Positions 7,404-38,668 of a stretch of DNA of 64,000 nt are shown here, piece by piece. Positions within the stretch are counted from its first letter, which is position 1, and every line of letters begins with the position of its first letter. The notes below the pieces were generated by a model. That model searched no databases. It saw only the letters and a list, made by a program, of their open reading frames with translations, and was not told the DNA's origin. The stretch spans positions 124,001-188,000 of IMG/VR virus record IMGVR_UViG_3300031933_000215. One strand, 5' to 3'. A program made the translations under genes and the position numbers.

Positions 7404-7510
7404 GGGATATTACTCCAATTGCGTTTGATGTATGACCGCGATGAGGTCATCAGACTACACGCACGCGGTCAAGAGGGACGTGAGTTCCACAACTCACATA
7501 TTATTGGTAT

Positions 7511-17777: not shown

Positions 17778-19808
17778 TTACGACAGCATGTACTTCCAGT
17801 GATAGCCGTAGTTGGAGTTAACGTTGGCTTTACCGACGTTAACGTACCCATCCACCACTTCGTAGTTCTGGTAAGTAGTAGGCTGCAGTGTCGGTGGGTT
17901 AGAACGCGAGAACTGCTGGAATGTCGGAATCACCATGTCGCCCATGAACGTATCGCCCCAGTTATCCGGGAACTGAAGGTTAAACGAGCTACCAGTGTTC
18001 CATCCTGCATCATAAAATATAGTCACAGAATGCAGGTGCAGGCCAGCGGCCTTGTTGTCCAACCGAACGATGCTGCCGTTGTTCAGTTCTTCGATGGTCA
18101 GTGCGTCCATGTCGGTCTGAGAACCGAAACCAACCACAATGACGATGGCTTCCAACGTGCCGCGCATCAACTTAGCCCGTTTGCGAACCAGGTTCACAGA
18201 CCCACCGGTAGAACCACCACCGCCCGGGATGTCAATGGTCACTGCACCACCAGCTTCGGTGACGTTAACGCCTTCGCCGGTGAAGTTAAACGAAGCGGCG
18301 GCGTCTGTTACGGCGGTACCGTCTTCTTTAACCGCGACCGAACCGCCCGTGCCGGAACTGCCCTGCAGGGAATCCAGCCATTCCTGTTCGGTACCGGTGA
18401 AGCCATTAGCCACCGCCACTTCGTATGCCGAATCACCCTCAGGACCAGTCGGACCGGCAGGGCCTACGGGGCCTTGAGGACCTTCCGGGCCAGCCGGACC
18501 TTGAGGACCGTCGTTACCCTGAGGACCTGCGGGACCTTCGGGACCCTGAGTACCCTGGGGGCCTTCCGGACCGGCGGGACCGGCTGGCCCCATGGGACCT
18601 TGCTCACCGGTGTCACCTTTCGGCCCTTGGAGTGAACCACTATTGAACCAAGCAGAGCCGTCCCAGATCCACAGGTCAGTACCAACAACATAACCTTGAC
18701 CAGGATTCACGCCCGACATCGGCAATTCGGTGTCGCTGGCCAGTGTACCCAAGATCTGGATTGGATCACCCATCTCACCCTGGATGCCTTGGGGACCTTC
18801 AGGGCCCTGTGGGCCTTCCGGACCAGTCGGACCTGCAGGACCGGCCGGGCCGGTATCACCAACGTCACCCTTGTCACCCTTCGGACCTTGAGGCCCAGCG
18901 GGACCTGCGGGACCAATAGGACCTTCGGCACCGTCAGCGCCTTGAGGACCGGTGGGGCCCTGTGGACCCTGCGGACCTTCCGGCCCACGAATCGGACCGA
19001 GGTCTTCATACGCGTCACCGGTCCATCCCCAGAAGTTACCACCTACCAGATAGCCTTCGCCAAGGGTACCGGTTGAAGGCAGTTCGGCCGTGCTGGTCAG
19101 TGTACCAACCACGCTAATGCCCGGACCCATCTCACCTTGAATACCCTGTTCACCCTGAGGACCCTCAGGACCCATGGGGCCTTGGTCACCCTTGGGACCC
19201 TGTGGGCCGGTCGGGCCTGCAGGACCCTCGGGACCAGGGTCGCCCTTCGCGCCTTTGTCACCTTTCAGTGACGTCAGCCACTCGCTTTCAGTGCCAGTAA
19301 AACCAGCGGCCATGGCCGCTTCAAACGCAGATTGACCAGCGTCGCCTTGTGGGCCTTCCGGACCCATGGGACCCTGTTCACCGGGTGAACCTTGAGGGCC
19401 TTGAGGGCCTTCGGCACCATCCGCGCCCTTAGGACCCACAGGACCTTCGGGGCCCTGGTCGCCTTTCGGGCCTTGAATGCCCTGAGGACCGGCTTCGCCT
19501 TGAGGACCGACCAACGAGTCCATCCATTCTTGAACCGTTCCCTGGAAACCAGAGTCCTGTGCCATTTCATAAGCACTCTTACCCTGGGGTCCTTTGAGCG
19601 ACTGAATCCACTGTTCAAACGTGCCCTGGAAACCATCTTCCACGGCGAGATCGAACGCGGACTTACCTTCTTTCCCTTTCAGGTTAGCAACCGCCAGACG
19701 ACGGTTCACGTAATTACCCGACGCGTCCTTCTGGATCACCTCGACGTAATCGTCAGCTTTGATCTGACCGGCAACGTTCAGGTCAGAAATCTTCTTTGGT
19801 GTAGACAT
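17778..19808 (-). CDS. Collagen-like tail fibre protein (676 aa)
   Basis: KKISDL start, long Gly-X-Y tracts, same spacer modules as 10043-14629, distinct C-terminal domain. Confidence 0.8.
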
Positions 19809-24792: not shown

Positions 24793-25208
24793 ATCTCTCC
24801 TAACTCCTCTTTACAATAGCCGATGATAACCGAGTACAGTACTGTTGCTTTGAAGGAAGTGGTCAGAACCGCCGGTATCAGAGTATCGTAGACGACCGCC
24901 GTTTCTTCGTTGTAAGGTGTGAAATGGTCGTCGTCGTGGAGTAGTTGCGGGTGAGATAAAACCGAATAAAAGTTATTGTCGTATTGTTTTGAAATATAAT
25001 CGGCGTAACAAATCGCCACGATGTAGCTCTTCGCCGGGAACTCCAACGCTTCGACGTCACCATTGATCATGTTCAACGCACTGACAATCACATTGGGGTT
25101 ATACGATCCCCCAAAGTAATCGGTTTTATTGCCTTCCCGATGAAAGCGTCTAAGACGGTCTAGCCAACCACCATTCAATGAGTGATTTGTACCCACTGCA
25201 TTCGCCAT
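24789..25208 (-). CDS. Hypothetical protein of the radical SAM cluster
   Basis: FPAKSYIVAICYA...FY.VL..P.LL.DD.HF.PY; overlaps upstream rSAM gene; start uncertain. Confidence 0.6.
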   Translation of the reverse strand: MANAVGTNHSLNGGWLDRLRRFHREGNKTDYFGGSYNPNVIVSALNMINGDVEALEFPAKSYIVAICYADYISKQYDNNFYSVLSHPQLLHDDDHFTPYNEETAVVYDTLIPAVLTTSFKATVLYSVIIGYCKEELGEI

Positions 25209-26049
25209 CCAATCCTTCCTTTCGTCGATAGTGTTCTGTCAAACATGTACCCTTAAACTCACACGAGCGACACACATCCGAAAGCAGGGTGTGTTTTTCT
25301 TTTTGGGTCCATTCAAGGTACGCATTGAAATCCGGGAGTTCCAGGAAAAACTCCCGATCGGCGTCGTCGAACTCCAAGACCCCAAAATTGCCATTTGGAG
25401 TGATGTAGACATGGTCGTCCGAGAACGCGTTACGGACACCGTCAGCGACGTCGTTCAATAATGCTGTGTTACGTAGCTGGCTGTTTGGAAAACCCATTAC
25501 CCAGCGTTTCACGTACTCTACAAAGGCATTGTTTGTATTACCTCGATCATTGGCCTGATTGGGACTGTAAGGTTTGATTTCCACCGAGTTCAAGTTCGCT
25601 AACGACCGGATCAATTCGATTTGCTGATCGACGTCACCGGCCATCACTTCCGGCGTGGCCAAAACAATGACGTTTATCGGACGTGAAAACACCAACATGT
25701 TTGTGAAAACTTGTTCATGGTGGGGCCGGTGGTCAAAGTCATACGAGACGTTGACGTCGATATCGTCGTCGTATAGCCATTCCGACATTTGGTAGAAATT
25801 GGTGGTTATGGAAATGGGACCATCGTAATATCGCCGAACGACCCCCTTTAGATCATGGACGTACGTCTGATCCAACAGGGTCACTTCACCACCATAAATC
25901 TCAACGGCTTCAATTTCGGGGAGTTCCGAGAGACGATGGTCCAGGTGTGTCAAATCCAACACGCGTCGAGACCGGAGCTGGTCTTCGGTTAAATAACAGT
26001 TCGCACATCGGAAATTACATCGGTACAAAGGGTTTATCGATACGATCAT
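25150..26049 (-). CDS. Radical SAM protein with Cys-rich C-terminus
   Basis: CNFRCANC (CX3CX2C), YGGE, ITTN; C-terminal CRSCEFKGTC...C. Confidence 0.9.
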   Translation of the reverse strand: MIVSINPLYRCNFRCANCYLTEDQLRSRRVLDLTHLDHRLSELPEIEAVEIYGGEVTLLDQTYVHDLKGVVRRYYDGPISITTNFYQMSEWLYDDDIDVNVSYDFDHRPHHEQVFTNMLVFSRPINVIVLATPEVMAGDVDQQIELIRSLANLNSVEIKPYSPNQANDRGNTNNAFVEYVKRWVMGFPNSQLRNTALLNDVADGVRNAFSDDHVYITPNGNFGVLEFDDADREFFLELPDFNAYLEWTQKEKHTLLSDVCRSCEFKGTCLTEHYRRKEGLDGECSGYKSLIEWWLARPS

Positions 26050-26071
26050 TTAACACCCCATGATAGAGAGG

Positions 26072-26662
26072 TTAGTAACCTGTGGGGTGACCAAAGAACA
26101 GATCGCATGCTATCGACATACGCATAACCCCAGGACTGGGTTTTACGTAGTGTCCCAGATAACTTGGGAACACGTAAACCGTATCGGCTTCGGGCGTTAT
26201 TTGGTAGTTGGCAAAGTGGTTTTTCGTTATGTCCCACTCATAACCACGACCGGCACAACCACGTGGGTCGACGAGAACCAGATTCCCTGGATTGGGAATC
26301 AGATAGAAAACAGCACTCACTTGAGCCCCGTTATGCACGTGCAGATCAAGACCGTCATTATTCTGACTATAAATACACCACATGCTGGTTCTATAGTCTT
26401 TGTCGTTCAGCGTAATGCCGAACTCTTCTTGAACGTAACGGAGCAATGCGGGTAGTATAACGTCGTCGTGCAGTTTGCTCAACGTAGGCCGTTCGGCGGG
26501 GTCGTATAAGTCAACCCTACTACCATACGCATTGTTATTGCTGTCCTCGTTGATCCCCATGGAAAATATCTCGCCGATGGCGACGTCTATATCCACATCG
26601 TGATCCTCGATGTGGTCTTTGTGGATCACGGTTTTCCAAGGTTCTATGCGCTCGTATGCCAT
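26072..26662 (-). CDS. 2OG-Fe(II) oxygenase (TIGR02466-like)
   Basis: HVH, SAVFYL, L.LVDPR, VFPSYLGHYV.P, RMSIA motifs. Confidence 0.8.
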   Translation of the reverse strand: MAYERIEPWKTVIHKDHIEDHDVDIDVAIGEIFSMGINEDSNNNAYGSRVDLYDPAERPTLSKLHDDVILPALLRYVQEEFGITLNDKDYRTSMWCIYSQNNDGLDLHVHNGAQVSAVFYLIPNPGNLVLVDPRGCAGRGYEWDITKNHFANYQITPEADTVYVFPSYLGHYVKPSPGVMRMSIACDLFFGHPTGY

Positions 26663-26671
26663 TGTCGTCCC

Positions 26672-27364
26672 CTATGGGTTTTTGAACGTGGGGTCGCCTG
26701 GAAGTAGGTACTGTTTTATTTTGATCACTTCCAACGTGGATGCATCAAACAGACAACCAAACGCCCGTTTCTTTCGTGTGGTATCACCGTCATTCGGTGG
26801 CGCAACATTAAAAAAGGTACCTATTTCCTTCCCAGTCAGGTCGGTGTAAAAATAGATGTCCCGGAAACGAAGTAATCGTTCATCGTTTAAATGTAAACCT
26901 ACACCGAAATAGTCGATTGGTACACACCCAGGCGGTAGCCGTGGGTATTGATGTCGTGCGATGTTGAGGTCGTACACCTTTAATGCTTTTTGTTGCGTCT
27001 CCAATTGTAGCTTTAACGTGTAGGACGTACCTTGAACAAAACCCTCGGGTAGCTCACAATCAAACAATGGGGCGACCTGAGCAACGTCACACCGACGGTA
27101 CGATATCGAAATAGTGTCTTCGGGGTAGTTGGTATTGTTTTTGCGGGTAAGGCCGATCAACTCCCAATTCTTCAATTCCGGCCACGGACTGGCTAAGATT
27201 TCAGGACTGTGTTCGATAGCCATATTGAACAAGGGTAGTACCGGTTCTGATAACACGGGGAAGTTGGGACGGTAGGTATTCTCGGACAACCCATTGGAAT
27301 CAAGGGTGATTTCCTTTGCAGTCGGGTCGACCCCATCGATGTTAGTCAAAGAAACATTAGACAT
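26672..27364 (-). CDS. Hypothetical protein of the radical SAM cluster
   Basis: 230-aa ORF overlapping the upstream rSAM stop; GAGG RBS. Confidence 0.6.
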   Translation of the reverse strand: MSNVSLTNIDGVDPTAKEITLDSNGLSENTYRPNFPVLSEPVLPLFNMAIEHSPEILASPWPELKNWELIGLTRKNNTNYPEDTISISYRRCDVAQVAPLFDCELPEGFVQGTSYTLKLQLETQQKALKVYDLNIARHQYPRLPPGCVPIDYFGVGLHLNDERLLRFRDIYFYTDLTGKEIGTFFNVAPPNDGDTTRKKRAFGCLFDASTLEVIKIKQYLLPGDPTFKNP

Positions 27365-28391
27365 TTCTTACCTCAATCAAATCGACAATACCAACTTCAC
27401 TAGCTTGATTCAGTTCCGCTTCCAACGCTTTCATCTTACTGCAATGTTCGTCAACCCGACAACTTTCCTGTGTATCCATGATCGTTTTCCGACATCCGTT
27501 ACACAAACTGAAGAGTGAACATCCCCAACAGTCGTCATGCATGGACAGGTATAACATCGAATCCTGAAGAGGTGTGGTGATTGCGTCACTGGCCATCTCA
27601 TTTTCAAAATCAATCGGAAACATGTCATCGTCACCAAATGCACCACAACTGTAATACGACCCGTCGGGATGTAGGTTACGAATTCCTTTATCGCAGTCAC
27701 GACTTATGGGACATGTCGTCTTAAGTCCGCCCAAGGAACGTATGAACTGCTGTGTGTTGTATTCCCATGGAGTCAACCCCGCCTTATGTATTTCGAGGTA
27801 TTTGGCGTAAATGTCCCCCATCAAATAAGAAATACTTTGACGCCCGCTGGCGAATGCCCAATTAAGCTTACACACTACGCCCATTTTTTTGGCCAGTCTG
27901 ACATTATCCAAGGCGCGTTGAACGTTACTCTCGTCTATCACTGAGATGAAATCTGGACGGTACCCGACCCGCTCTAAGAACAGGTCACTGACTGCCCAAA
28001 AGTCCTCTTCTAAAAACACCCGTGTACGAGTAATTAATCGACTGTCACCGTAATGGAAGGACGTCCCCACCCCGATTTGTGGGTGGCGAAACAGCTCAGT
28101 CCATTTGTCGGGCCGCTTATAAAAGTCCCACAAGTTGGTCGTGAAGCTGACAATGGTTTCGGTCATGCCGCGTTCTTCCAACAGCTTGAGGATATCCCAA
28201 TAATAGTCGGGCCTGAGCATCAACGGATCACCACCGTTAACAATGATCGTTTGGGTGTTCGGAAACCGATCCAGAAAGCGAGCAATATAGTCCAGATTGA
28301 GAACGTCTTTCTTATCGTCGGTTATGTTGGTGGAGCTGCAGAACGTGCAGGCGAAGTTACAAAGTTCCGTTGGTTTGATGATCAGATCCAC
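27357..28391 (-). CDS. Radical SAM/SPASM-domain protein
   Basis: IIKPTELCNFACTFC, NGGDPL, FTTNL; SPASM-like C...C...YSCG...CWGCSLFSLCNGC...HC; GTG start with AGGAG RBS. Confidence 0.9.
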   Translation of the reverse strand: MDLIIKPTELCNFACTFCSSTNITDDKKDVLNLDYIARFLDRFPNTQTIIVNGGDPLMLRPDYYWDILKLLEERGMTETIVSFTTNLWDFYKRPDKWTELFRHPQIGVGTSFHYGDSRLITRTRVFLEEDFWAVSDLFLERVGYRPDFISVIDESNVQRALDNVRLAKKMGVVCKLNWAFASGRQSISYLMGDIYAKYLEIHKAGLTPWEYNTQQFIRSLGGLKTTCPISRDCDKGIRNLHPDGSYYSCGAFGDDDMFPIDFENEMASDAITTPLQDSMLYLSMHDDCWGCSLFSLCNGCRKTIMDTQESCRVDEHCSKMKALEAELNQASEVGIVDLIEVRNV

Positions 28392-28460
28392 GGGTAAACT
28401 CCTGTTCGGTATTGGATGACTATATAGTTAGACGTCGGCGTTGAAAACAACCACACACAG

Positions 28461-28495
28461 CATAAAACCACGGCCTCAGGTACCGTGGTTTTATG
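28461..28495 (-). terminator. Rho-independent terminator inside the radical SAM cluster
   Basis: CATAAAACCACGG...CCGTGGTTTTATG 13-bp perfect stem directly after the stop at 28496. Confidence 0.75.
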
Positions 28496-29479
28496 TCACC
28501 ATTGGTTTACTTTGGCGATTGTTTCCTTCGGTAAAACACACTCGGTGATTCCATAATCTTCCATGATTGACAACACGCGATGGTCCAGACACGTCGGCAG
28601 AAACGGACACTCGCCACACTCTTTCGTTTTGGTGGTGTAAGCGTACTGTTCTAAGATGACGGCGTCGTACTTCTTACGATAGTCCTCTACCCCGTCAACC
28701 CGGTACCGGTCACGGATTTGTATCAAATCTTCGTAAACGATGGGGATGGCGTAAAACTCATTCTCATAAAAAATGATTACGCGTTCTAGTTTGTCGTGCG
28801 GACTCACCACATCGACGTGTTGGTCGACCATACAGCCGTCGTTAGTCGCCTGAGTGGTGACGGTCACAGATTTTAACCAGTTAAACGCGCGCCGGTACTG
28901 TTCTGGATCGTTACTGGTTCGAGCAAACGACAGATTAAAGTCCACACCTTGACCGTACTGTCTGAGGTAAAAGTTGTTCAACGTTTCGTAGTTATCGACT
29001 ACCAACGACTGACTCAAATTCAACTGTGGGTGCAGGTACAGGTTCGGGAACCGGGCTTTGACGTCCCGAACCTTCTCGGCAATGACCGCATTGTAGCGTT
29101 CGTTCAGGTTCTTCGATTCCGGAATGACCACGTTGATCTGAAGTTCCTTCATACCAAGACGATCAAGGGCGTTCAATACCTGTAAGTCGGGTTTCACCAT
29201 GGTGGAGTTGACAACCAGTCGATCAAACCTTTTGATTAATTCAGTCAACCGAATGTCATTCAGGATCTCCATCGTGTTGGTGGCGGTGAAGATATCGGTA
29301 CTACCCAAAACGACCGCATATGGGTCGAGGTGTTCTAGGAACTCATAGGCCACGCGGTACATCTTATCCGTAGCTTTATTGGGGGAATCACGATCAACAT
29401 GGCAACCCGCGCAATTGAATGCACAACCCGCTAAGATCTCCAACTGCAGTTCGAATGAGTTGAATTTTTCGATGTTCAC
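28496..29479 (-). CDS. Divergent radical SAM protein
   Basis: CAFNCAGC motif; C-terminal CGECPFLPTC...C; lacks the canonical GGE. Confidence 0.8.
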   Translation of the reverse strand: MNIEKFNSFELQLEILAGCAFNCAGCHVDRDSPNKATDKMYRVAYEFLEHLDPYAVVLGSTDIFTATNTMEILNDIRLTELIKRFDRLVVNSTMVKPDLQVLNALDRLGMKELQINVVIPESKNLNERYNAVIAEKVRDVKARFPNLYLHPQLNLSQSLVVDNYETLNNFYLRQYGQGVDFNLSFARTSNDPEQYRRAFNWLKSVTVTTQATNDGCMVDQHVDVVSPHDKLERVIIFYENEFYAIPIVYEDLIQIRDRYRVDGVEDYRKKYDAVILEQYAYTTKTKECGECPFLPTCLDHRVLSIMEDYGITECVLPKETIAKVNQW

Positions 29480-30480
29480 GAAATCACTCCATAGAGTCGT
29501 TTAAACTCACAATGTTTGTTTGTGATGTTCACGTGGTCACTGTGTAGAAAACAACCCAACCCGCAACGCTGATAAAACTCACAACTCAGGCACTCGCGTT
29601 CTTGAATGAACCGGACCTCGGACTCATGGATGTTGTCAACAACAGTCGGGTCCGATTTGAACTGGTCCCGATCGGCCAAAATCCGACAAGAGCCCGTATG
29701 TCCTGTCGGAAGAATGATGAACGAACTCCGACAGGTCGCTGTGTTGTGGTGATTCTCACGAAACCCTTTGACTGGTTGACATTCCGGATAGTGTTTATCC
29801 AACCACAGGAAAAAGTCAACCAGTTCAACATCACTGGGCTGTAAAATTTCAGCGTTATCTTCGGGTGAATAATAGTCAAAGAAAATCGGGTAGTCCTGGT
29901 AAAGTCGATCAAACACGACGTTGGAACCACGCATGAATCGTTCAATGTTAGGTCGGGTCAACACCACGGAAATGTTTGACAGCCAGGGTTTGAACTTGGC
30001 CAGGTTTTCCTCAAACAGTTTAAGCGTCTGAGAGTTAAACCGACCCGCAGCATCGTAAGACGTGCAAAAGGTGAACGGAATCAGCAGTTCTTCCAATGTC
30101 TTGATGAACCGCATCACCCGCTCGGCCTTCTCGAACACTAAGTTGGTCACGAAATTGATTTCACAGTGTTTAACTGATGTCACTACCCGATGACAGAACT
30201 CTACATAGTCGTCGAATACTCGATCGGGGAGTTCGTCCATGAACAACTCCCCACCCATGACGTTCACACTGTAAAAATCGTGATCGTTGGTGTTATTAAT
30301 GACAACGCTTGCTTTCTCAACAATCTCATCAACACCAGTCCAGTCGCTGTGGTCCTGCCAACAAAACCCACAGCTAAGGTTGCAGCGCTCAAAGAAGTTG
30401 ATGAAAAATTCTTTATTCTGTCCCCGCTTTGCTTCCACTATCTCCACCAGCGGTATCAGGTCCGGGTTGTTCGTGGCCAT
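29476..30480 (-). CDS. Radical SAM/SPASM-like protein
   Basis: CNLSCGFC, MGGE, FVTNL, TSYD; C-terminal C...C...CLSCEFYQRCGLGC...C. Confidence 0.9.
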   Translation of the reverse strand: MATNNPDLIPLVEIVEAKRGQNKEFFINFFERCNLSCGFCWQDHSDWTGVDEIVEKASVVINNTNDHDFYSVNVMGGELFMDELPDRVFDDYVEFCHRVVTSVKHCEINFVTNLVFEKAERVMRFIKTLEELLIPFTFCTSYDAAGRFNSQTLKLFEENLAKFKPWLSNISVVLTRPNIERFMRGSNVVFDRLYQDYPIFFDYYSPEDNAEILQPSDVELVDFFLWLDKHYPECQPVKGFRENHHNTATCRSSFIILPTGHTGSCRILADRDQFKSDPTVVDNIHESEVRFIQERECLSCEFYQRCGLGCFLHSDHVNITNKHCEFKRLYGVIS

Positions 30481-31165
30481 TGAGTATCTCCAAAGCGTAT
30501 TTGTTTAAAAGCAACCAGTTGGGGTTTTCTTTATCCCCAACGAAGAAGTGAAACAGGTTCTTTCCGTTGAACATGTATTCTTCAAACTGGACAGGGAAAT
30601 AAAACTGCCGGTAGTCCACCGCATCTCGGATAGAGAAAAACAACTCGAAGAACGAAGGAATCTCAAACAGCCAGACAACGTTAACACCGATATATTTCGG
30701 GTCGTTAATAACACCGTCATATCCCCGGAGATCTGGGTCTTTGTCATCGTCTATTGCTTTGATGTAGTCACAGTACTTGACCATCGAAGAGCAGAACAAG
30801 AAATACCGGGCCAGCAGGTCGGAGTGTTCTTCAACAAATTCATCTAAGAATCCATCTGGGGTTTCGAATGTAGCGATCCCAGAGGTGTCCCCCTCCATGA
30901 AATGGATCAGTACCAACAACACAAGAACGTTGAGTTCTTCACACTTAAAGAGTGTGTTGATTTCCATGTAAACACTGAGTAATTCTGAGAGTTCTTCTTT
31001 TGACAACGTCTCCACGTTGATCCGTGTTTTGACGTTCAGGTTTGCCAGGTAAAACACAAAGGGTTTCCCCTTTATTTTCGAATTACTGTAATCGACAGTA
31101 TACACTTTGTCGTTTTCGGCAATGACGTTGTGTAGGTCACTGATGGGGAGTGGTACGGTAATCAT
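30413..31165 (-). CDS. Hypothetical protein of the radical SAM cluster
   Basis: 250-aa ORF, GAGG RBS, overlaps next rSAM gene. Confidence 0.6.
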   Translation of the reverse strand: MITVPLPISDLHNVIAENDKVYTVDYSNSKIKGKPFVFYLANLNVKTRINVETLSKEELSELLSVYMEINTLFKCEELNVLVLLVLIHFMEGDTSGIATFETPDGFLDEFVEEHSDLLARYFLFCSSMVKYCDYIKAIDDDKDPDLRGYDGVINDPKYIGVNVVWLFEIPSFFELFFSIRDAVDYRQFYFPVQFEEYMFNGKNLFHFFVGDKENPNWLLLNKYALEILNGHEQPGPDTAGGDSGSKAGTE

Positions 31166-31175
31166 GACGTTTGCC

Positions 31176-32210
31176 TCATCCGTTCAGATTCATTTGTTTC
31201 AACACGTCTCGGTCTGCGTGGTACAAGTACCCGATGAAATTGTTATTCATGTTATCCCGAAATTCCGTGCGACCAAAAATTTGACTACAGTGGGTATTTA
31301 TATCCATGTTGACCAGGTCTCTGGCTTTCGTTACCGTGAACGAACCCTCAGGAAGAACCCTGAGTAGGTGGTTCAGGAATGGATCGGTGGTTCCATTCTT
31401 CGCATGGACTTTTTCGACAAGCTCACGTATTTCCTTGTGGTGCCTTTTAATAAACGCCACATTCCCTGGGTGGTTATCTGGATTGAACAGCACTGTGTCC
31501 TCCAGTGCTTCGATCTGGTCGTCGATATCGTCCCGTTCCAAGTCAATATCAAACCCAAAGTTTTGCTTTAGGTTGTAGATCCCATATAACAAGTCACGTC
31601 GCACGCCCACGAAGTCCCATGCCACTGATTTCCAGAGGATTGTTTCCATGCGCTCTACGAACGCGGATACGTAGCGATCAGATGGGTCAAAATCAACCAA
31701 GAGAACATGCGCCAGTAAGTATTCAAAACTGATACGCTCTTTCAGTTCGGCTGGGACGGGGCGCGGTTCTACTTCCTCATACCAAGCCCTTACAGCATCC
31801 AGGGTGGGGATTGTGATGTTTCGAAAACCGTCTTTTCGCGAACCTTTGGTACTGGTGCGACTTCCATGCTCGTACTTGTGGTTCACCGCATTCAGTTTCA
31901 AGAATCGATGTACCATCTCCACACTTGCCAGTGGGAATAAGGATCGCAGCCAGACCACCAAAAAGTAATTCAGGGAACGCTCGTCTATTAAAATGGTGGT
32001 CTTTTGTCCGATAGGCGTCAGGCATTCAACAAATGTGAATAGGTCACCAAAGTCTCTCTCGATTGCGTCGACCGACACAAACTGATACAATGGCCTAGGG
32101 CCATGCGTTACACGACACTGTCCAAGTGGTCCTACATAGACCAAGTTGTTGCGACCTACATTTCCAGTGAAATCGTAATCAATATAAACCTTATCCAACA
32201 AATGTAACAT
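31176..32210 (-). CDS. Hypothetical protein, paralog 3 of a tandem triplet
   Basis: MLHLLDKVYIDYDF; SFEYLLAH; ME.ILW; IFGR; YLY shared with the two upstream genes. Confidence 0.7.
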   Translation of the reverse strand: MLHLLDKVYIDYDFTGNVGRNNLVYVGPLGQCRVTHGPRPLYQFVSVDAIERDFGDLFTFVECLTPIGQKTTILIDERSLNYFLVVWLRSLFPLASVEMVHRFLKLNAVNHKYEHGSRTSTKGSRKDGFRNITIPTLDAVRAWYEEVEPRPVPAELKERISFEYLLAHVLLVDFDPSDRYVSAFVERMETILWKSVAWDFVGVRRDLLYGIYNLKQNFGFDIDLERDDIDDQIEALEDTVLFNPDNHPGNVAFIKRHHKEIRELVEKVHAKNGTTDPFLNHLLRVLPEGSFTVTKARDLVNMDINTHCSQIFGRTEFRDNMNNNFIGYLYHADRDVLKQMNLNG

Positions 32211-32232
32211 TATTTTTTTTACCTGCCGTCAG

Positions 32233-33270
32233 TCAGCCGTTCATTTTGAAATACTTCAAGGTCTCCGGCGTCAGATTGTAAAGATAATTAACAAAGACGC
32301 CGTTCGTGTCTTTGGTCATCTTCTCTCGACCAAAAAGAAAAGACCAGAGTGATTCTCTGTCGACAGCCACCAGTTCTTTCAGAACACTCCCGGTGAATGG
32401 TCGTTCCGGGTCTAAAAGGTCAAACAAGAAACGCCGATACTGGTCACCGTACCCAAGAAGCTCATCCACTTTATCCATCATCTTTCTGATGTACGCGTAA
32501 TCCGCTTTGACGACATCCACGTCTTTATAGGTTATTGCCGGGTCGAAAAACCGCTTAACCTCAGGCTGATTAAGTTGGTACTCGATATCATTTCGATCAA
32601 AATTAATCGGCAGACCAAGTGTTTTCTTCAACCTAAACCCATTGTAGAAAGCCGCCATTCGACGCTTAACAAAATCCCTAGCGCAGGATATCCACAACAT
32701 GTGTTCAATTTTCTTAGAAAGTTGATCTACATGCGGGTCAGCGTCGTCAAAATCCACACTTAAGGAGTGAGCCAAGAGTGTTTCATAGCTCAGGTGTTTT
32801 TTGAGTTCCGAACAATACCCACTACCATGTTTCGAACCCGCGTAAAAGCGTTTCGTGTCGTCCAGTGTTGGAGCCGGAAGCTGGTCAGCGTAATGATCGT
32901 AAGCAAACCCCCTAACTCGAACAAAACGATGGTGTATGTAGAAGGTCCTCAGGATTGCGTGGATGATTTCCACCGGCATCTCAGGATACACCGCTCGATA
33001 GTGGGTCACCACTAGCTGGTACATGTCGTCAATGTCCAACATTAACCACACGTCGCCTTCAGTAAGAATCAATGTTTCCATGAATGTAGGTAGGTCGCCA
33101 AAAGCATCCAACGCTTCTTCGAGGTTGGTGAATTCCATGAGTCCTTCGGGATGGAATTCATTTTGAGTATGCGTACGGTCGTCCAGATAAATGTACGAGT
33201 CGGTTGGTTGTTTCAGGTCAACGCTCGTAAATGCAAAGTCCGCCCGGACGTCATCAATTAAGTGCAGCAT
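32233..33270 (-). CDS. Hypothetical protein, paralog 2 of a tandem triplet
   Basis: Start MLHLIDD at 33270 behind AAGGA RBS; SYETLLAH, IEHMLW, LFGR, YLY. Confidence 0.7.
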   Translation of the reverse strand: MLHLIDDVRADFAFTSVDLKQPTDSYIYLDDRTHTQNEFHPEGLMEFTNLEEALDAFGDLPTFMETLILTEGDVWLMLDIDDMYQLVVTHYRAVYPEMPVEIIHAILRTFYIHHRFVRVRGFAYDHYADQLPAPTLDDTKRFYAGSKHGSGYCSELKKHLSYETLLAHSLSVDFDDADPHVDQLSKKIEHMLWISCARDFVKRRMAAFYNGFRLKKTLGLPINFDRNDIEYQLNQPEVKRFFDPAITYKDVDVVKADYAYIRKMMDKVDELLGYGDQYRRFLFDLLDPERPFTGSVLKELVAVDRESLWSFLFGREKMTKDTNGVFVNYLYNLTPETLKYFKMNG

Positions 33271-33272
33271 GG

Positions 33273-34322
33273 TTATGTTTCCTTTGTTGGGGACAGGACC
33301 ATATCTGAAATCTTTACAGGCGTGACTGAATGCAGGTAACTGAATATAAGGGAGCCTGTTCCCCATAATGCATCGTCGATACCGAAGAATGCACTCCACG
33401 GACGCTTCCGGTCGGCGTCAATCAGCTCGATGAATTCGTCGTGTGTGATCTCATGGTCCTTCAAGAAGAAGCTAACGGCGAGCTCCTTGAAGTCCTCTAC
33501 AATGTTATTGCGTTTGTTGTTAACGCTAATAGCGTGGTGGATTTTCTGGGCGTTAGCTGCAGTTATCTCATTAAGTGATTCATCAAACCCCAGCGCTTCA
33601 TCCAGCTTTGAGATTTGTTCCTCGATGTCGTCCGCCAGCGGATCGATATCTAGGTCTAGGTTTTTCTTTAGACCGAAGATTCCTAATAACAGCCTACGGC
33701 GCCATGTGGTGTAGTCAGTCACCAACATTTGCCACAACAACGCTTCCATCCGTCGTCTAAAACAGATGACATAAGGATCTGACTCAGAATAGTTACACGC
33801 ATGTGCGTGAACCATAAGGTATTCAATAGAAACGTTCTCTTTTACCAAATCGGAGAACTCACCATTTACTCCCGCCTCTTCGTACCAAATGCGCGTCTGC
33901 ATTGGTGTCGGGACTGTAAGTCCGAGTCTACCCTCACGATTAATGCTCGCGCGGGTGGAAAGGCGAATCTGGCTGTATTTTTGGTCGATCGTCACCATTC
34001 TCAAGAACCGATGTGTGTTCTCAAGCGTGATGTTTGGAAAAATACCACGCAAGAAATGAACGTAAAAACGGTTTAGATCTTGCTCGTCGATGAACGCCGT
34101 GACATCACGACCACTGTGAATAATGGATTCGATGAATCCATTTATACCACCAGGGGCGTCTATAAGCACATCAAGATTGGGGTACTTCATCAGCGGAGTT
34201 GCGTCTTGAGAAAAAGCCTTAGACCCGAGGGAGTTAATATAAACAATATCTTTCGGGTTGGCCCTAGCGTTCGGACTGGAAAATGAGTAATCAAGCGACA
34301 GGCCGTTTGTCAACCGGATCAT
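33273..34322 (-). CDS. Hypothetical protein, paralog 1 of a tandem triplet
   Basis: MIRLTNGLSLDYSF; SIEYLMVH, MEALLW, FFG, YLH; ATGA-coupled to upstream gene. Confidence 0.7.
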   Translation of the reverse strand: MIRLTNGLSLDYSFSSPNARANPKDIVYINSLGSKAFSQDATPLMKYPNLDVLIDAPGGINGFIESIIHSGRDVTAFIDEQDLNRFYVHFLRGIFPNITLENTHRFLRMVTIDQKYSQIRLSTRASINREGRLGLTVPTPMQTRIWYEEAGVNGEFSDLVKENVSIEYLMVHAHACNYSESDPYVICFRRRMEALLWQMLVTDYTTWRRRLLLGIFGLKKNLDLDIDPLADDIEEQISKLDEALGFDESLNEITAANAQKIHHAISVNNKRNNIVEDFKELAVSFFLKDHEITHDEFIELIDADRKRPWSAFFGIDDALWGTGSLIFSYLHSVTPVKISDMVLSPTKET

Positions 34323-34861
34323 CGTCTGCTCCTTGAACCGTGGCAGTTGCTGTGGCAGTTCGAATGACAGACTGACAGATCCACGATCTCACCGTTGTGA
34401 ATGCGTTCATATAACTCGTTCTGAACTGTTTGGATCAGGTCGGATAGATTTGACCGATCAGCATCGTTTCGAGTGGAAATGTAGGTCGGGTCACCACCGG
34501 CGGTTTTCAAGCTGTGTATGCTCTGGCGGTAATTATTGTTCAGTGCTGCAATACCCCACTCTTTATCGTGATCGCCGTTTGTGTAATTACTGCCAGAATA
34601 ATGACGCGCGGTGTAAACCTTGCGCATTGAAGTACAACGTTCCGCTTCGGCTTTGATCACGTCAACAACGTTACTTGCATCGACATCTCCGGTGTTTGCA
34701 TCAGTACCCCTATCAAAATGAGACAGTTCCACCAGCGGACTTTGGTCCATGTACTTGTCGTCCCGGGCAGAACCCTTCCACCATTTCGCTTGGTCCTTGG
34801 CGTACTGGTTGATGTTGTTATTGACAGCCGCGTGAAAATCACTCCGTTTTAAATCAGCCAT
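34319..34861 (-). CDS. Putative radical SAM substrate/precursor protein with CHSN-CHSN-CHGSRSRR tail
   Basis: 180 aa; 4-residue Cys-His repeats at the extreme C-terminus; directly downstream of the first rSAM gene. Confidence 0.65.
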   Translation of the reverse strand: MADLKRSDFHAAVNNNINQYAKDQAKWWKGSARDDKYMDQSPLVELSHFDRGTDANTGDVDASNVVDVIKAEAERCTSMRKVYTARHYSGSNYTNGDHDKEWGIAALNNNYRQSIHSLKTAGGDPTYISTRNDADRSNLSDLIQTVQNELYERIHNGEIVDLSVCHSNCHSNCHGSRSRR

Positions 34862-34862
34862 G

Positions 34863-35999
34863 TTAGAATACCTCTACAACTGGGATCGTTTTTGTATCCG
34901 AAGTCAGCGCGGACGGCTCTTTCTCATACCGAATGCCTTCCTCACCCATGAACCCATTGAGTACTTCCTTCAGGATGTCCTGATCGGTGTTTTTCATGGA
35001 CCGCATCATGGACTTTGGAGAAGCACAGATATCGCCCTGCCAATTAAGTTGATGACAATCGCCATTACAAACGTCAAATACGTCACAACTGAAACAGACT
35101 TCGTTCAGGGTGCTTTCGGTTGCAATGTTACATCCACGTCCTTCCGAGAACACGATATCTGAAATGGTTTGATCCAAGGTTCCGAACGTCGTCTCAGGGG
35201 CGCCATTGGGACACCCGCCAATGGTACCATCGGCGTTCAGGGTTAGAATCTTCTGTTCGCATTCCCGACTACGGCACCCGGAAAACGTATTGAATACAGT
35301 GCTGGTCAGCAGGCTTTCTAGGAACATGTTCAAGATCTTTTCGTACGCCTTGTGTTCCAACGTCTGTTCCCACATTTTCAAGAACCACGCGTCCAACTCC
35401 AGATTGGTAGGAAAAATACCGGTGTTCTCACGGGCGTTACCATTCTCAGTGATGCGTTCAAAGTTGATGAACGCAACCCCAAGGTTGGTCATCTTGTTGA
35501 TCAAGTCGATTGGCTCAACATCCATCAGGTCTTTGGACACGCAAATCATGACCGTGACGTCTATGCCTTCGGCCACTAACTTACGGACGTTTTCTTCCCA
35601 CAGCGCTTCTTGGTTGCGGTTCCCTTGCCAACGGATGCTGTAATCCCAGGATGTCCCGATTGAAGTTCCTGCCACTTTCTTCAGAAACGCCAGTCGGTCA
35701 TCTGTCAGCTTATACGTCAGGTTGGTTTGAATACCCCATGTCAAGTTATCCCAGAGTCCATCCAGCTCATCGTAAACCTTTTCCATTTTGTCCAGCGGGC
35801 AGAGCATCGGCTCGCCACCATGGAACGAGATGTTGGCGGAACGGAAGGTGGGGAACTGAGCTTTCAGTCGGTGAAAGAAGTCAATGGTGGCATCCGGGTC
35901 AAACCAACCCTTCTTCCCGTTGGTACCACTTGTGAAACAGTGCTGGCAGTTTAACTGGCAAGTTTCGGTAGTTTTCAGGTAGACCATTAAATCACGCAT
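34863..35999 (-). CDS. Radical SAM/SPASM-domain protein (peptide-maturase-like)
   Basis: YLKTTETCQLNCQHC, FHGGEP, IQTNL, TSWD; SPASM-like CRSREC...GGCPN...CFSCDVFDVCNGDC...C; start MRDLMV behind GAGGA. Confidence 0.9.
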   Translation of the reverse strand: MRDLMVYLKTTETCQLNCQHCFTSGTNGKKGWFDPDATIDFFHRLKAQFPTFRSANISFHGGEPMLCPLDKMEKVYDELDGLWDNLTWGIQTNLTYKLTDDRLAFLKKVAGTSIGTSWDYSIRWQGNRNQEALWEENVRKLVAEGIDVTVMICVSKDLMDVEPIDLINKMTNLGVAFINFERITENGNARENTGIFPTNLELDAWFLKMWEQTLEHKAYEKILNMFLESLLTSTVFNTFSGCRSRECEQKILTLNADGTIGGCPNGAPETTFGTLDQTISDIVFSEGRGCNIATESTLNEVCFSCDVFDVCNGDCHQLNWQGDICASPKSMMRSMKNTDQDILKEVLNGFMGEEGIRYEKEPSALTSDTKTIPVVEVF

Positions 36000-36075
36000 G
36001 GTACGTCCTCGTTTATTTCTAATGAATGTCGCTACTGTACAATCATGACCATAAGTAAAAAAAGCAGCAGTGGGC

Positions 36076-37005
36076 TTACACCCACTGTGCCGGCCAAACG
36101 ACCTTCCAACCACCGTTGACGTAGGCTTGCAGTTGATTGTTACGGACCCGCAGACTGGTCTCGTCTGTAGAACCAATTCGCACGTAACGCCCGTCGTGGT
36201 GATTCACGTTCGGGTTAGCGTGGGTGGCAAGTGCGACACCCACGGCGTGTGGTGACATGTACCGGGTTTTGGTGGACATGTCCGCCGCCTGGGTATCCGT
36301 GGCCATTTTGTAGTTTTCGACGTCCCCCAGTCCCACCTGGGCCTTAGTAACCTTGTGTGGGTTGGTGCCGTCTTCCATGTGGTCGACCAAGCGGTTCTCG
36401 ACTCGGTTTCGATCTTCGGCTGCTTCTTCAAACAACATCAACGCGTAGGCACGCGTTTCATCGTGAAGTGCTTGGTCACCAGCCATGATCGCCTGAACAA
36501 TCCGTTCCAGTTCGGTGACAACCGGCTCAAACCCATACAGTTCCCACAAGGCGTGCAGGTGGCCAGCCGCTGGGTACTCGTTAGGCTTGCCGATGATGTT
36601 GGCCCACTCCACGGGCCGATCTTCTTCAGCCAGTGTGTCGATCACCTGCTGGAGTGCGTCGGTTGAAACTGCAAAGTCTCCACCCACTACCTGGTAATCC
36701 AGGAACACACTGGTCGAAACATTGGGGTTAACAACGATGATCGCCCCACAGACTTCCAGACCGCTTCGGGTCGTGGCCCGTTCGTACAGGTAAGTGGCGA
36801 TATAATCATCGCCCTTACGAAGCTCTGCACCTGACACATCCCGGAGGACCATGTCGCGGGTGTAGAACCCGCCGTAATTGGGAACCAAGACCCGGTAGTT
36901 ACCGGTGGTCACGGCGGCGTCCAGATCGTGTCGCTCGCCCAGGATGCGGTTATCCGGATTCCGGCCCGTCAAATCCAACGGGTATTTGTTAACAATGAGT
37001 GACAT
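36076..37005 (-). CDS. Virion structural protein (baseplate/fibre-anchor type)
   Basis: YPLD.TG.NP.N.I.GE N-terminus; H.....NPH.VTK.QVGLG.V.NY fibre repeat; paralog of 37022-38668. Confidence 0.7.
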   Translation of the reverse strand: MSLIVNKYPLDLTGRNPDNRILGERHDLDAAVTTGNYRVLVPNYGGFYTRDMVLRDVSGAELRKGDDYIATYLYERATTRSGLEVCGAIIVVNPNVSTSVFLDYQVVGGDFAVSTDALQQVIDTLAEEDRPVEWANIIGKPNEYPAAGHLHALWELYGFEPVVTELERIVQAIMAGDQALHDETRAYALMLFEEAAEDRNRVENRLVDHMEDGTNPHKVTKAQVGLGDVENYKMATDTQAADMSTKTRYMSPHAVGVALATHANPNVNHHDGRYVRIGSTDETSLRVRNNQLQAYVNGGWKVVWPAQWV

Positions 37006-37021: not shown

Positions 37022-38668
37022 TTAGGCTTCAAGTTGGGCGGACGCGTCATCGAATGCCGCAATCAGGGTGTCCGTGACGTCTTGGGCACCGGCACCGACG
37101 GTGGGAATCGGTGTCCGACCACTTCCACGGGTTGGGTAGTACAGACCAGGATCGGGCAGGAACTGACCTGTCGGTTGACGCACTGGGATGAATGTAATTC
37201 CTTCAGCGGGAACGTTGGTCACATCCAGTGACAGTTCCATGACCCGCTCAGCGCCGGTACCGGTGATACCCAACATGAAATCCCGCATGGGCGGGATGCC
37301 GTTCAGTGTGGTTATGTTTACCGTTTCGTTTGTCCAGTCGGCTTCAATACTAACCCACGCTTTACGTCCATCGGGTCCTGGTACGCTACCAAGCATGTGA
37401 AGGGGTTCGTCGGTTTCACTGAGGTGATAAAACGGCAGATGTTCATCGCGTCCGAAACTGTCTCCAGAGGTGAAGTCCCAGGTATACGTTGCGAAATACA
37501 CAAATTGCGTGTACATGTCGTCCTTGATGTCACCATACGTCATGTTCTCCAGCATTTGGGAGTTAGCAGCCGTGCCCAACAGGATGTCCTGTTTCAACCC
37601 TTCGAGGGTCATCCCAAATGTCCGGTCGGTGTCGTAAGCGGTACCATCGACCCGGAGGTAATTCTGCAAGATACCGTTGATGGTATCCATGCTGATTGCG
37701 CCGATATCCGCAGCGGTAATTCCGTGGGGGTTATTGGTGTCACTGAAATGCGGTTCCAGAACCTCGTCCTTGAGGGCTTGGATGACCACCTCTACCAGAT
37801 ACGGGGTCATGTACCGGTCGTTACGGGTCCCGTCATACGCTTCGCCCGGTGTGGCGATTCCGAAGTTCTGTACTAGCGAAAGACCTACGTCGGCTTTATC
37901 AGTACCGTGGGGGTTGTCGGCGTTCAGGTGTTCGTCAATTTCCCGTTGTACAGCTGCCCCTACAGCAACGTCCGTCGACTTCGGTGACATATAACGGTCA
38001 CTGCGGAGTCCTTCGGCTGCCTCGGTCTCGTTGGCCATCGGGAAGTTTTGTACGTACTCCAGCCCCACCTGTTTCTTGGTGACCATGTGAGGGTTGTCCC
38101 GACTGTTCATGTGGTCGGTTACAGTCCCCGCTTCCGTATCACCCAGTGCACGATTGATATCACCGATGGCTTCAACCACTTCTTCGAAACCGATCAGTTC
38201 ACCGGTGCCCTGATCGTGTGGGATCGGTGGGAACAACGCCGGGAGTGTGTCAATCTGACTCCATGCGCGAGTCAATGGGTTGACAGCTTTATTCGACAGC
38301 TCTTCCAATACGGCTTGATCTGAGAAGCCCCAGTGACCCCCGATGGTTTGGTAGGTCATGGACACAATACCACCGATATCGCGACTCAGGAAGCGCAGAG
38401 AACCTGCCAGAGCCTTACCGGTGTTGTTGGAGCCTTCGGGGAAATAGTGACCAAAGAGAAAGTCACGTCCTTCCTTATACAGACGACCAGTTGCTTGGTC
38501 ACGGATCTCAAACGACTCCACGTAAAACGGAGCCGCCTGAGGGATGATGAAATAATAGTCATCCCGGCCAGGGACCTGCAGGGTCTGCAACTCCCCATCG
38601 ATTTTGTTTGCCGGGTTGGTACCGTACGGGTCGAACTCGTACAGTCCCGTGGTGTTTACAGTAGCCAT
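37022..38668 (-). CDS. Virion structural protein with three NPH-type fibre repeats
   Basis: Y.FDP.G.NP.N.I.GE; NPHMVTKKQVGL, NPHGTDKADVGL, NPHGITAADIG. Confidence 0.7.
   Translation of the reverse strand: MATVNTTGLYEFDPYGTNPANKIDGELQTLQVPGRDDYYFIIPQAAPFYVESFEIRDQATGRLYKEGRDFLFGHYFPEGSNNTGKALAGSLRFLSRDIGGIVSMTYQTIGGHWGFSDQAVLEELSNKAVNPLTRAWSQIDTLPALFPPIPHDQGTGELIGFEEVVEAIGDINRALGDTEAGTVTDHMNSRDNPHMVTKKQVGLEYVQNFPMANETEAAEGLRSDRYMSPKSTDVAVGAAVQREIDEHLNADNPHGTDKADVGLSLVQNFGIATPGEAYDGTRNDRYMTPYLVEVVIQALKDEVLEPHFSDTNNPHGITAADIGAISMDTINGILQNYLRVDGTAYDTDRTFGMTLEGLKQDILLGTAANSQMLENMTYGDIKDDMYTQFVYFATYTWDFTSGDSFGRDEHLPFYHLSETDEPLHMLGSVPGPDGRKAWVSIEADWTNETVNITTLNGIPPMRDFMLGITGTGAERVMELSLDVTNVPAEGITFIPVRQPTGQFLPDPGLYYPTRGSGRTPIPTVGAGAQDVTDTLIAAFDDASAQLEA

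Follow-up and report, generated by a model that had tools for sequence, protein, structure and literature searches.

A phage protein with a radical-SAM-linked Cys-His tail and a homologue in the virus particle

Radical SAM (rSAM) maturation of whole proteins is known in only a few cases, namely sulfatases, QhpC, CrpA and HxsA, and none of these is a component of a virus particle. In the HXS anti-phage system a full-length protein rather than a short peptide, HxsA, carries short His-x-Ser repeats rich in basic residues, its gene sits with two or more rSAM genes and a small partner protein (HxsB, HxsC and HxsD), and a site-specific modification was mapped to an S-H-R-S-S motif (PMC13128918). The anaerobic sulfatase-maturating enzyme (anSME) combines an rSAM core with a SPASM domain containing 8 Cys, lacks an RRE (RiPP recognition element, the leader-binding domain; RiPPs are ribosomally made, enzymatically modified peptides), and acts on a sulfatase bearing the motif C-x-[PA]-x-R. 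Thioether-forming SPASM enzymes act on Cys-rich substrates (SCIFF/CteB, QhpD/QhpC and CrpC/CrpA; PMC13692751), and CrpC shows that such enzymes install thioether cross-links on proteins. In SCIFF the Cys residues are spaced every four positions. The triceptide enzymes XyeB, YhhB, FxsB and AmcB form three-residue cyclophanes on short peptides. Metal sites are also found at the ends of virion proteins, including the HxH iron sites of phage spikes and fibre tips and the [4Fe-4S] cluster of lambda gpL, and those sites are not known to need dedicated enzymes.

Here we describe a 180-residue protein of a jumbo phage, encoded in a 64,000-nucleotide stretch (the window; positions 124,001 to 188,000 of IMG/VR record IMGVR_UViG_3300031933_000215), that ends in VCHSNCHSNCHGSRSRR-stop and whose gene directly follows that of a SPASM rSAM enzyme (rSAM_A; Table 1). 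A preliminary description based on sequence alone had noted three Cys-His units at four-residue spacing with varied codons and a basic tail on a 164-residue body, starting 1 nt after an rSAM gene, and this observation is confirmed. The ORF encodes a protein ending ...DLSVCHSNCHSNCHGSRSRR-stop, with C165 at 34369-34367 and the stop codon at 34321-34319, so that the interval originally marked is exactly the tail and 164 residues precede it. The rSAM_A ORF stops at 34863 and the ATG lies at 34861, a 1-nt gap, while the stop of the gene overlaps the ATG of the next (ATGA at 34322-34319); these junctions suggest translational coupling. The pattern CHxxCHxxCH occurs once in the six-frame translation of the window and 0.0 times on average in 200 shuffles.

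Table 1. Coordinates of the Cys-His-tail gene, its cassette and the adjoining tail genes in the window
Feature	Coordinates	Strand	Description
Cys-His-tail protein	34319..34861	-	180 aa; body is residues 1-164, tail is C165-R180 = CHSN-CHSN-CHGS-RSRR
C-terminal tag	34319..34369	-	(C-H-x-S/N)3-R-x-R-R plus stop
rSAM_A	34863..36002	-	SPASM radical SAM enzyme with CxxxCxHC plus 8 C-terminal Cys and no RRE; the listed ORF runs up to a TTG at 36176, but homologues start at the Met at 36002
Paralogue 1	33273..34322	-	Member of a family of about 345 aa (RSL2 ORF069-like), without assigned function
Paralogue 2	32233..33270	-	Same family; the listed ORF starts at a GTG at 33399, probable start is the Met at 33270
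Paralogue 3	31176..32210	-	Same family
p20767	30413..31165	-	phrog_20767, third member of the conserved triad; predicted helical protein of new fold, not found in Atu_ph07 virions
rSAM_B	29476..30480	-	Full SPASM Cys pattern
rSAM_E	28496..29479	-	Divergent rSAM with CAFNCAGC and 4 C-terminal Cys (RSL2 ORF071-like)
rSAM_C	27357..28391	-	Full SPASM Cys pattern
230-aa protein	26672..27364	-	No family match; inside the co-directional block
2OG-Fe(II) oxygenase	26072..26662	-	PF13759
rSAM_D	25150..26049	-	4 C-terminal Cys
Tail-fibre or virion structural protein	36076..37005	-	phrog_2163; directly upstream of the cassette
Tail protein	37022..38668	-	phrog_13857/2163; upstream of the cassette

The tail is nearly invariant in a large family that is restricted to phages and comprises 845 clusters at 50% identity. 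Of the 162 family proteins in hand, 146 end in exactly (CHxx)3RxRR, and Cys, His and the three Arg of the tail are invariant in homologues that share only about 20-25% identity with the body; across the family the bodies drop to about 20% identity. Among these 146, the fourth residue of each unit is mostly Ser (132, 96 and 129 proteins for the three units) and Asn is the minority, so the unit is C-H-x-S/N. The family is essentially absent from cellular genomes: a search of 185,579 species genomes gave 9 hits, all on contigs of metagenome-assembled genomes (MAGs), and the seven with enough flanking sequence carry rSAM genes of the cassette. Pfam and NCBIfam searches gave nothing for the 180-residue protein, and PHROGs matched only phrog_35144, of unknown function, over the C-terminal 45 residues. 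An AF2 model (pLDDT 71.8) shows an alpha/beta body with low confidence in the tail; Foldseek against the PDB found nothing below E = 1, and matches in BFVD are family members only, including gp170 of Agrobacterium phage Atu_ph07. The ESM Atlas gave only chance-level leads (portal fragments at 0.84, with a pLDDT of 0.38 for its own model).

Linkage to the rSAM genes was examined in both directions, since motif-bearing homologues without linked rSAM genes would have spoken against the proposed relationship, and none were found. All 45 loci identified through the tail motif carry rSAM genes, and nearly all show the order [cupin]-rSAM_A-CHtail-p20767-...-rSAM_B-rSAM_C-rSAM_D. Of 80 loci identified through rSAM_A alone, 74 have a Cys-His-tailed gene just downstream (49 with the full tail, 22 with the variant ...CHSNCHGSCHGS[I/L], and 3 with CHSSCHSSHSSRNRR), and the remaining 6 break off within 1.5 kb. 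The conserved triad of rSAM_A, the tail protein and the 250-residue p20767 sits in a cassette with four more rSAM genes and a 2OG oxygenase, next to tail-fibre genes. The same cassette is present in cultured phages of three unrelated groups, RSL2/FLC6/SURPRISE13, Atu_ph07 and pPa_SNUABM_DT01; counterparts of the tail protein are PA10_00065 of the P. aeruginosa phage pPa_SNUABM_DT01 and ORF068 of RSL2. A blastn search of the cluster against 50,697 phage records found only a 58-nt match to phage Goslar, so no close cultured relative exists. For p20767, a Foldseek search of the PDB returned nothing below 0.3, a PDB profile search was empty, and a profile-profile comparison with the 345-residue paralogue family showed no relation.

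rSAM_A has the SPASM architecture of enzymes that modify peptides and proteins. It scores 30.2 against a cut-off of 29.5 for PF04055 and 26.2 against 27 for TIGR04085, just under the cut-off, but all 7 motif Cys are invariant. Like anSME, it combines CxxxCxxC with 8 conserved C-terminal Cys and no RRE, and it aligns over its full length with anSME (4k37), the best full-length solved match; anSME is also the best NCBIfam match (3.7e-18), but at 65.8 bits against a cut-off of 349.45. The last unit of the tail, C-H-G-S-R, has the C-x3-R spacing of the sulfatase motif, yet there is no sulfatase domain, Pro/Ala at the third position is replaced by G/S/N/T, and variant tails lack the Arg altogether. 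With respect to HXS, the unit C-H-x-S contains H-x-S, but the repeat period is 4 with an invariant Cys at the extreme C-terminus, no Pfam domain, peptidoglycan-binding domain or signal peptide is present, and that system is bacterial and defensive. Against the HxsB/HxsC models, whose cut-offs are 370 and 267.9 bits, rSAM_A scores 26.9 against 370, and rSAM_B and rSAM_C score 15.3 and 26.9 against 267.9. In contrast to CteB and CrpC, which carry an RRE, rSAM_A starts at the rSAM core, and CteB aligns only from its residue 101. TIGR03974 is hit only by rSAM_B, at 16 bits against 425, and the SCIFF precursor is a peptide of about 45 residues, whereas the protein here has 180 residues and only 3 tail Cys, each followed by an invariant His. 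For the cyclophane-forming families XyeB, YhhB, FxsB and AmcB the hits are weak (2e-9 to 3e-4), with scores of 19.6, 33.5, 36.8 and 32.7 bits against cut-offs of 450, 445, 370 and 425. An aromatic-x-polar triad, H-x-S/N, does occur three times in the tail, but its third residue across the family is mostly Ser, and the invariant Cys has no role in that chemistry. The rSAM family scores are all far below curated cut-offs, so no chemistry can be assigned from them.

Evidence for a place in the particle comes from a published proteome of Atu_ph07 (PMC6102473, Table S5). The homologue gp170 was detected in purified virions with 8 peptides and 35% coverage and was most abundant in band 1, at the top of the gel, despite a verified mass of 31.89 kDa, while gp165, gp168, gp169 (the p20767 counterpart), gp171 and gp172 are not in the virion list. 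The loading buffer described in that study lists no reductant, so ordinary disulfides could explain the high-mass migration, and one other small protein behaves the same way. gp170 shares the predicted fold of the window protein (Foldseek E 1.6e-4, TMq 0.60) and is linked to the family by tblastn (2e-7 to family member P0013).

In sum, what the analysis establishes is the motif and its conservation, the gene linkage, the restriction to phages, the enzyme architecture and the virion location of one homologue; that the tail is modified, by which enzyme and with what chemistry are inferences. We favor, with moderate confidence, a model in which the 180-residue protein is a virion structural protein, probably associated with the baseplate or tail fibres, whose C-terminal tag is the substrate of rSAM_A. 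In this view rSAM_A, and possibly the other four rSAM enzymes and the oxygenase, would modify the Cys/His/Ser tag on the full-length protein in the infected cell, and p20767 may help as a non-virion chaperone or presenter. The result would be a covalent cross-link (a thioether or a His-centred C-C/C-S link) and/or a metal-binding tip, and the protein would then be built into the particle with its body attached. Such a system would work like protein-level RiPP chemistry, as in anSME, QhpD, CrpC or HxsB/C, and not like a leader-peptide system. There is no direct evidence of modification, in that no mass spectrometry covers the C-terminal peptide and the tail would give very small tryptic fragments, and gene linkage would also arise if the tail served the enzymes rather than being their substrate. 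The interpretation offered in the preliminary description is partly supported. Its proposed link to the rSAM cluster is real and nearly universal, and its option of a structural protein with a cross-linked tip is favored. Its appeal to an aromatic-X-Asn (H-S-N) triad of the cyclophane type is weakened because Asn is not the conserved residue, and its alternative of an unusually long-leader precursor of a released peptide is disfavored by the virion location of the homologue and by the absence of an N-terminal RRE in rSAM_A.

The alternative that survives best, although we consider it unlikely, is that the tail is an unmodified metal- or Fe-S-binding site on a virion protein, which the preliminary description had also raised. 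Three Cys and three His, possibly multiplied in an oligomer, would coordinate Fe, Zn, Ni or an Fe-S cluster in a manner resembling the His-coordinated iron of phage spikes and fibre tips or the cluster of lambda gpL, and the rSAM genes would be neighbours because they act on other parts of the same tail structure. Only Cys, His and Arg are strictly invariant, as expected for ligands plus a charged tip, a homologue is in virions, and the cassette lies next to tail-fibre and baseplate genes. However, this does not explain why the gene is placed directly after rSAM_A in almost every lineage, including after rearrangements, or why Ser/Asn at the fourth position of each unit is also conserved. In addition, no HxH or CxxC-type ligand motif is present in the tail, and the monomer model is alpha/beta without a beta-helix. 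The two readings are not exclusive, since modification could create the metal site. Considerably less likely is that the protein serves the enzymes, its tail carrying an Fe-S cluster or electrons to load or reduce the five cluster-rich rSAM proteins (three with full SPASM Cys sets and two with four C-terminal Cys) during infection. Some phages that encode many rSAM proteins also encode Fe-S assembly proteins (PMC5332604), but the homologue is a virion component while the enzymes are not, there is no similarity to IscU, Nfu, A-type carriers, ferredoxin or flavodoxin, and an i, i+4, i+8 Cys spacing at an extreme C-terminus is not known as a cluster-carrier motif. Least likely is a scaffold or precursor whose C-terminal residues are converted into a released small molecule or cofactor, as in PQQ, mycofactocin or methanobactin biosynthesis, a reading suggested by the invariant core with a variable remainder and by several rSAM and oxygenase genes indicative of multi-step chemistry, but disfavored because no peptidase or exporter gene is conserved in the cassette, the protein is retained in virions (as shown for gp170) and the body has a conserved predicted fold across the family.

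A bolder reading, which we hold only tentatively, is that many large phages (phiKZ/RSL2-like, Rak2/Atu_ph07-like and numerous uncultured lineages) carry a dedicated pathway of several rSAM enzymes and oxygenases that would install an unprecedented Cys/His-based cross-link or metallocofactor on the C-terminal tag of a baseplate or tail virion protein. That would be the first RiPP-like enzymatic maturation of a virus particle component, and it may be needed for adsorption or for DNA delivery across the envelope. Here a nearly invariant 16-residue tag is tied to a SPASM enzyme and a partner of predicted new fold across hundreds of phage lineages, within a cassette of five rSAM genes that genome papers list only as "radical SAM/Fe-S oxidoreductase/cupin" genes of unknown role. 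Literature searches on phage rSAM, RiPP and virion combinations found only gene lists and no functional study, and no description of this family was found in the searched literature. If the tag is modified, this defines a new post-translational chemistry and a new step in the assembly or infection mechanism of jumbo phages, and it would also explain why these phages invest in so many oxygen-sensitive Fe-S enzymes. The question is directly testable because cultured hosts exist: Pseudomonas aeruginosa, Ralstonia, Burkholderia glumae and Agrobacterium.

Two other readings of the tail were also rejected. A heme-binding CxxxCH motif was rejected on reasoning alone, as nothing else in the cassette or the phage context points to cytochrome c maturation. 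A DNA-level tandem repeat is rejected because the codons differ (TGT/TGC/TGC, CAT/CAC/CAC, TCG/AGC and AGG/AGA/CGA), and the motif is therefore one of the protein and not of the DNA.

The tail protein has 180 residues and ends ...DLSVCHSNCHSNCHGSRSRR-stop, with a body of 164 residues preceding a tail that coincides exactly with the sub-interval singled out in the preliminary description. The three Cys, His and Ser/Arg positions are encoded by different codons (TGT/TGC/TGC, CAT/CAC/CAC, TCG/AGC, AGG/AGA/CGA), and the repeat therefore exists at the protein level and not as a DNA repeat. CHxxCHxxCH occurs once in the six-frame translation of the window and never in 200 shuffles. The upstream gene, which encodes the radical SAM (rSAM) enzyme rSAM_A, stops 1 nt before the ATG of the tail protein, whose own stop overlaps the start of the next gene (ATGA). 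Each element of the original observation is confirmed. Positions of the features discussed here are collected in the following table; the block from 38668 down to about 25150 lies entirely on the minus strand and is tightly packed. Mechanical ORF prediction over-extends two genes in this block at their 5′ ends, and alignment with homologues places the starts further downstream.

Positions of the tail protein gene, its cassette and other features (window coordinates unless a locus is named)
Feature	Position	Strand	Remarks
Large tail-fibre protein	10043-14629	-	1528 aa
Large tail-fibre protein	17778-19808	-	676 aa
rSAM_D	25150-26049	-	Four C-terminal Cys
2OG-Fe(II) oxygenase	26072-26662	-	PF13759
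230-aa ORF		-	Between rSAM_C and the oxygenase
rSAM_C	27357-28391	-	Full SPASM Cys pattern
rSAM_E	28496-29479	-	Four C-terminal Cys; very divergent (Pfam 22.8 bits) but keeps CxxxCxxC
rSAM_B	29476-30480	-	Full SPASM Cys pattern
p20767	30413-31165	-	Third member of the conserved triad
Three tandem paralogues of about 345 aa	31176-34322	-	23-28% identical to each other
Over-extended ORF	32233-33399	-	Called from a GTG at 33399; start by homologue alignment 33270
Tail protein	34319-34861	-	C165 at 34369-34367; ATG at 34861; stop at 34321-34319
rSAM_A	34863-36176 as called	-	Stops at 34863; called from a TTG at 36176 that overlaps the fibre gene; probable start by homologue alignment 36002
Five rSAM genes together	25150-36002	-	Within 11 kb
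Tail-fibre/virion protein	36076-37005	-	phrog_13857/2163 (both proteins)
Tail-fibre/virion protein	37022-38668	-	phrog_13857/2163 (both proteins)
Internal head protein	44699-46999		
RSL2 cupin	6945-7433 of locus L003		Precedes rSAM_A in most phages

The tail is the conserved part of a large phage family. A word-seeded search found 13 relatives, all of which keep the tail down to 25% identity, and in a 36-sequence alignment with a mean column identity of 34% only M1, C165, H166, C169, H170, C173, R177, R179 and R180 are invariant. A profile search of 1.84 billion cluster representatives gave 845 proteins at E <= 1e-3 and 568 at E <= 1e-10. Of the 162 proteins in hand, 146 end in exactly (CHxx)3RxRR, and most of the remainder have one-residue insertions, variant endings or C-termini that differ after the Cys-His units. 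The consensus is V-C-H-[S/A]-S-C-H-S-[S/N]-C-H-[G/S]-S-R-G-R-R, in which the fourth residue of each unit is Ser in 132, 96 and 129 of 146 proteins and Asn is the minority. The H-S-N triad of this window, which had been taken to fit a three-residue cyclophane pattern, is therefore a minor variant of a C-H-x-S unit.

Linkage of the tail to the rSAM gene was examined in both directions. Starting from the tail motif, a scan of viral contigs returned 45 loci; an ORF ending in a tail of this type was found in 44 of them, and the remaining locus (L048) carries two tandem copies of a variant tail. All 45 loci carry rSAM genes, and nearly all share the order [cupin]-rSAM_A-CHtail-p20767-[345-aa protein(s)]-rSAM_B-[rSAM_E]-rSAM_C-[2OG oxygenase]-rSAM_D, while in the few rearranged loci the rSAM genes lie within a few kb. 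Because that set was selected through the motif, we repeated the analysis with an rSAM_A profile alone. At least 360 viral contigs encode relatives, and among the best 80 the gene just downstream ends in (CHxx)3RxRR at 49 loci, in ...YCHSNCHGSCHGS[I/L] at 22 loci belonging to one lineage, and in WCHSSCHSSHSSRNRR at 3 loci, with the contig ending within 1.5 kb at the other 6, which could not be assessed. The occurrence of motif-bearing homologues unlinked to rSAM genes had been set beforehand as a condition that would refute the proposal, and it is clearly not observed. The invariant core is the triad rSAM_A-CHtail-p20767. A scan of one genome for each of 185,579 bacterial and archaeal species found only 9 loci (L130-L138), all on contigs of metagenome bins labelled Bdellovibrio/Bacteriovoracia, Gemella or Rhodobacteraceae; the seven with enough flanking sequence carry rSAM genes of the cassette, and the remaining two contigs are too short to judge. 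These are probably phage contigs binned with bacteria, and the family is essentially phage-restricted.

Variant tails, in the 22 loci within L071-L111, in L061/L063/L064 and in L048, are ...YCHSNCHGSCHGS[I/L]-stop without the Arg end, WCHSSCHSSHSSRNRR without the third Cys, and YCHSSCHSNVTCYNSRGRR. The lineage with the tail ending ...CHGS[I/L] lacks both the cupin and rSAM_B within the fetched flanks, which hints that those two genes relate to the RxRR end, although it is a single lineage and therefore a single event. Some phages carry two tandem tail-protein genes (loci L048, L088, L090, L092, L121 and L135), and L041/L043 have four Cys-His units and a rearranged cassette in which the rSAM genes lie downstream. 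The paralogues of about 345 aa, for which no family or fold was assigned, lie here between the tail protein and p20767 in three tandem copies, whereas relatives such as RSL2 ORF069 occur in 0-2 copies in other phages. The phage of this window also lacks the cupin/JmjC-like gene that precedes rSAM_A in most relatives. In RSL2 that cupin hits JmjC models and, weakly (5e-4, below the cut-off), Pfam T4_baseplate (PF12322), hinting at a link to baseplate assembly factors.

rSAM_A has CxxxCxHC plus eight conserved C-terminal Cys, a full SPASM domain, and begins directly at the rSAM core, so that it has no RRE (the leader-binding domain of RiPP enzymes). Its best curated match is the anaerobic sulfatase-maturating enzyme (anSME; 3.7e-18, 65.8 bits against a cut-off of 349), followed by DarE, CbpB, DynA, the cyclophane-forming families and HxsB, all far below their cut-offs. 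Among solved structures anSME (4k37) aligns over the full length, while CteB and 8vpo align only from their residues 101 and 112 onward, after their N-terminal regions. With the family alignment, AF2 predicts an alpha/beta body for the tail protein, with helices at 6-24, 62-76 and 136-156 and a hairpin at 79-107 (pLDDT 71.8, pTM 0.68), the tail itself having low confidence. Foldseek found no match to this model in PDB (best E = 1.0), and in BFVD it found only uncharacterised family members, including Atu_ph07 gp170 (E 1.6e-4, TMq 0.60). p20767 is confidently modelled (pLDDT 84.5, pTM 0.82) as a mostly helical protein, and searches of PDB by fold and by sequence returned no match.

The same module is annotated, without assigned function, in three groups of cultured phages, and the genome papers only list these genes. 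The first comprises Ralstonia phage RSL2 (ORF066 cupin, ORF067 rSAM, ORF068 tail protein ...CHSSCHTSCHGSRGRR) and related Ralstonia and Burkholderia phages such as FLC6, FLC8 and SURPRISE13; the second is Agrobacterium phage Atu_ph07 (gp172 cupin, gp171 rSAM, gp170 with tail ...CHSSCHASCHNSRSRR, gp169 p20767, gp168 rSAM); and the third is the related Pseudomonas phage pPa_SNUABM_DT01, in which the tail-protein match lies in PA10_00065, directly after a cupin and an rSAM gene, and six rSAM genes are annotated in the module. The Atu_ph07 virion proteome (PMC6102473, Table S5) lists gp170 at 31.89 kDa with 8 unique peptides and 35% coverage, found in gel bands 1-9 and most abundant in band 1, the top of the lane, whereas gp165, gp168, gp169, gp171 and gp172 are not listed. 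We verified that the 296-aa ORF weighs 31.89 kDa and that gp176 and gp177 match as well, so the numbering is the same. A 32-kDa protein running mainly at the top of the gel after 95 °C in SDS suggests a covalently linked or very stable assembly. However, the loading buffer as described lists no reductant, so disulfides are an alternative, and at least one other small protein (gp321) behaves similarly.

In sum, the data fit a virion structural protein whose C-terminal tag is the substrate of rSAM_A, and possibly of further enzymes of the cassette, with p20767 as a presumed non-virion partner. The pattern of an invariant tag, a variable body, an adjacent RRE-less SPASM enzyme, a partner protein and retention of the whole protein resembles protein-level rSAM maturation, of which the known cases are anSME acting on sulfatases, QhpD acting on QhpC, CrpC acting on CrpA (PMC13692751), and the HXS defence system, in which the rSAM enzymes HxsB/HxsC, with HxsD, mature the protein HxsA. 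HxsA carries basic His-x-Ser repeats, and a +8 Da change was mapped to S-H-R-S-S (PMC13128918). This is an analogy and not membership, since all family scores are far below their cut-offs. The motif, its conservation and its linkage to rSAM genes are established from sequence, and the virion location is established for one homologue, whereas modification of the tag, and by which enzyme, is inferred. The chemistry cannot be inferred from these data; thioether formation from the Cys residues, a His-x-Ser/Asn cyclophane, Cys oxidation of the anSME type (the last unit, C-H-G-S-R, has the C-x3-R spacing) and creation of a metal site are all candidates. The interpretation offered in the preliminary description is accordingly supported in part: its core inference, that the protein is the substrate of the cluster, is well supported by comparative genomics but unproven biochemically, while the His-x-Asn detail and the reading as a long-leader precursor are not supported.

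Among the alternatives, an unmodified metal or Fe-S site on the virion protein remains possible. A role of the protein as a cluster or electron donor for the enzymes is disfavoured by the virion location. A cofactor precursor is likewise disfavoured, by the lack of a peptidase or exporter gene and by retention in virions. The pairing of a SPASM rSAM enzyme with a protein substrate is a known arrangement, and what is new is the phage virion context, the (C-H-x-S)3-R-x-R-R tag, the partner with a predicted new fold and the cassette with five rSAM genes; no paper in the literature searched describes this motif or assigns a role to the cassette.

The cassette lies next to tail-fibre genes. Both fibre proteins upstream of it carry repeated ...NPH-x-[VI]T-x-x-Q/D-[VI]GL... 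motifs, and the two large tail-fibre proteins elsewhere in the window contain many repeated fibre modules (phrog_3904/819, collagen-like hits). The window also holds an internal head protein, an SbcC-like protein, an RNase H-like protein and UvsX, consistent with a phiKZ/RSL2-like jumbo phage.
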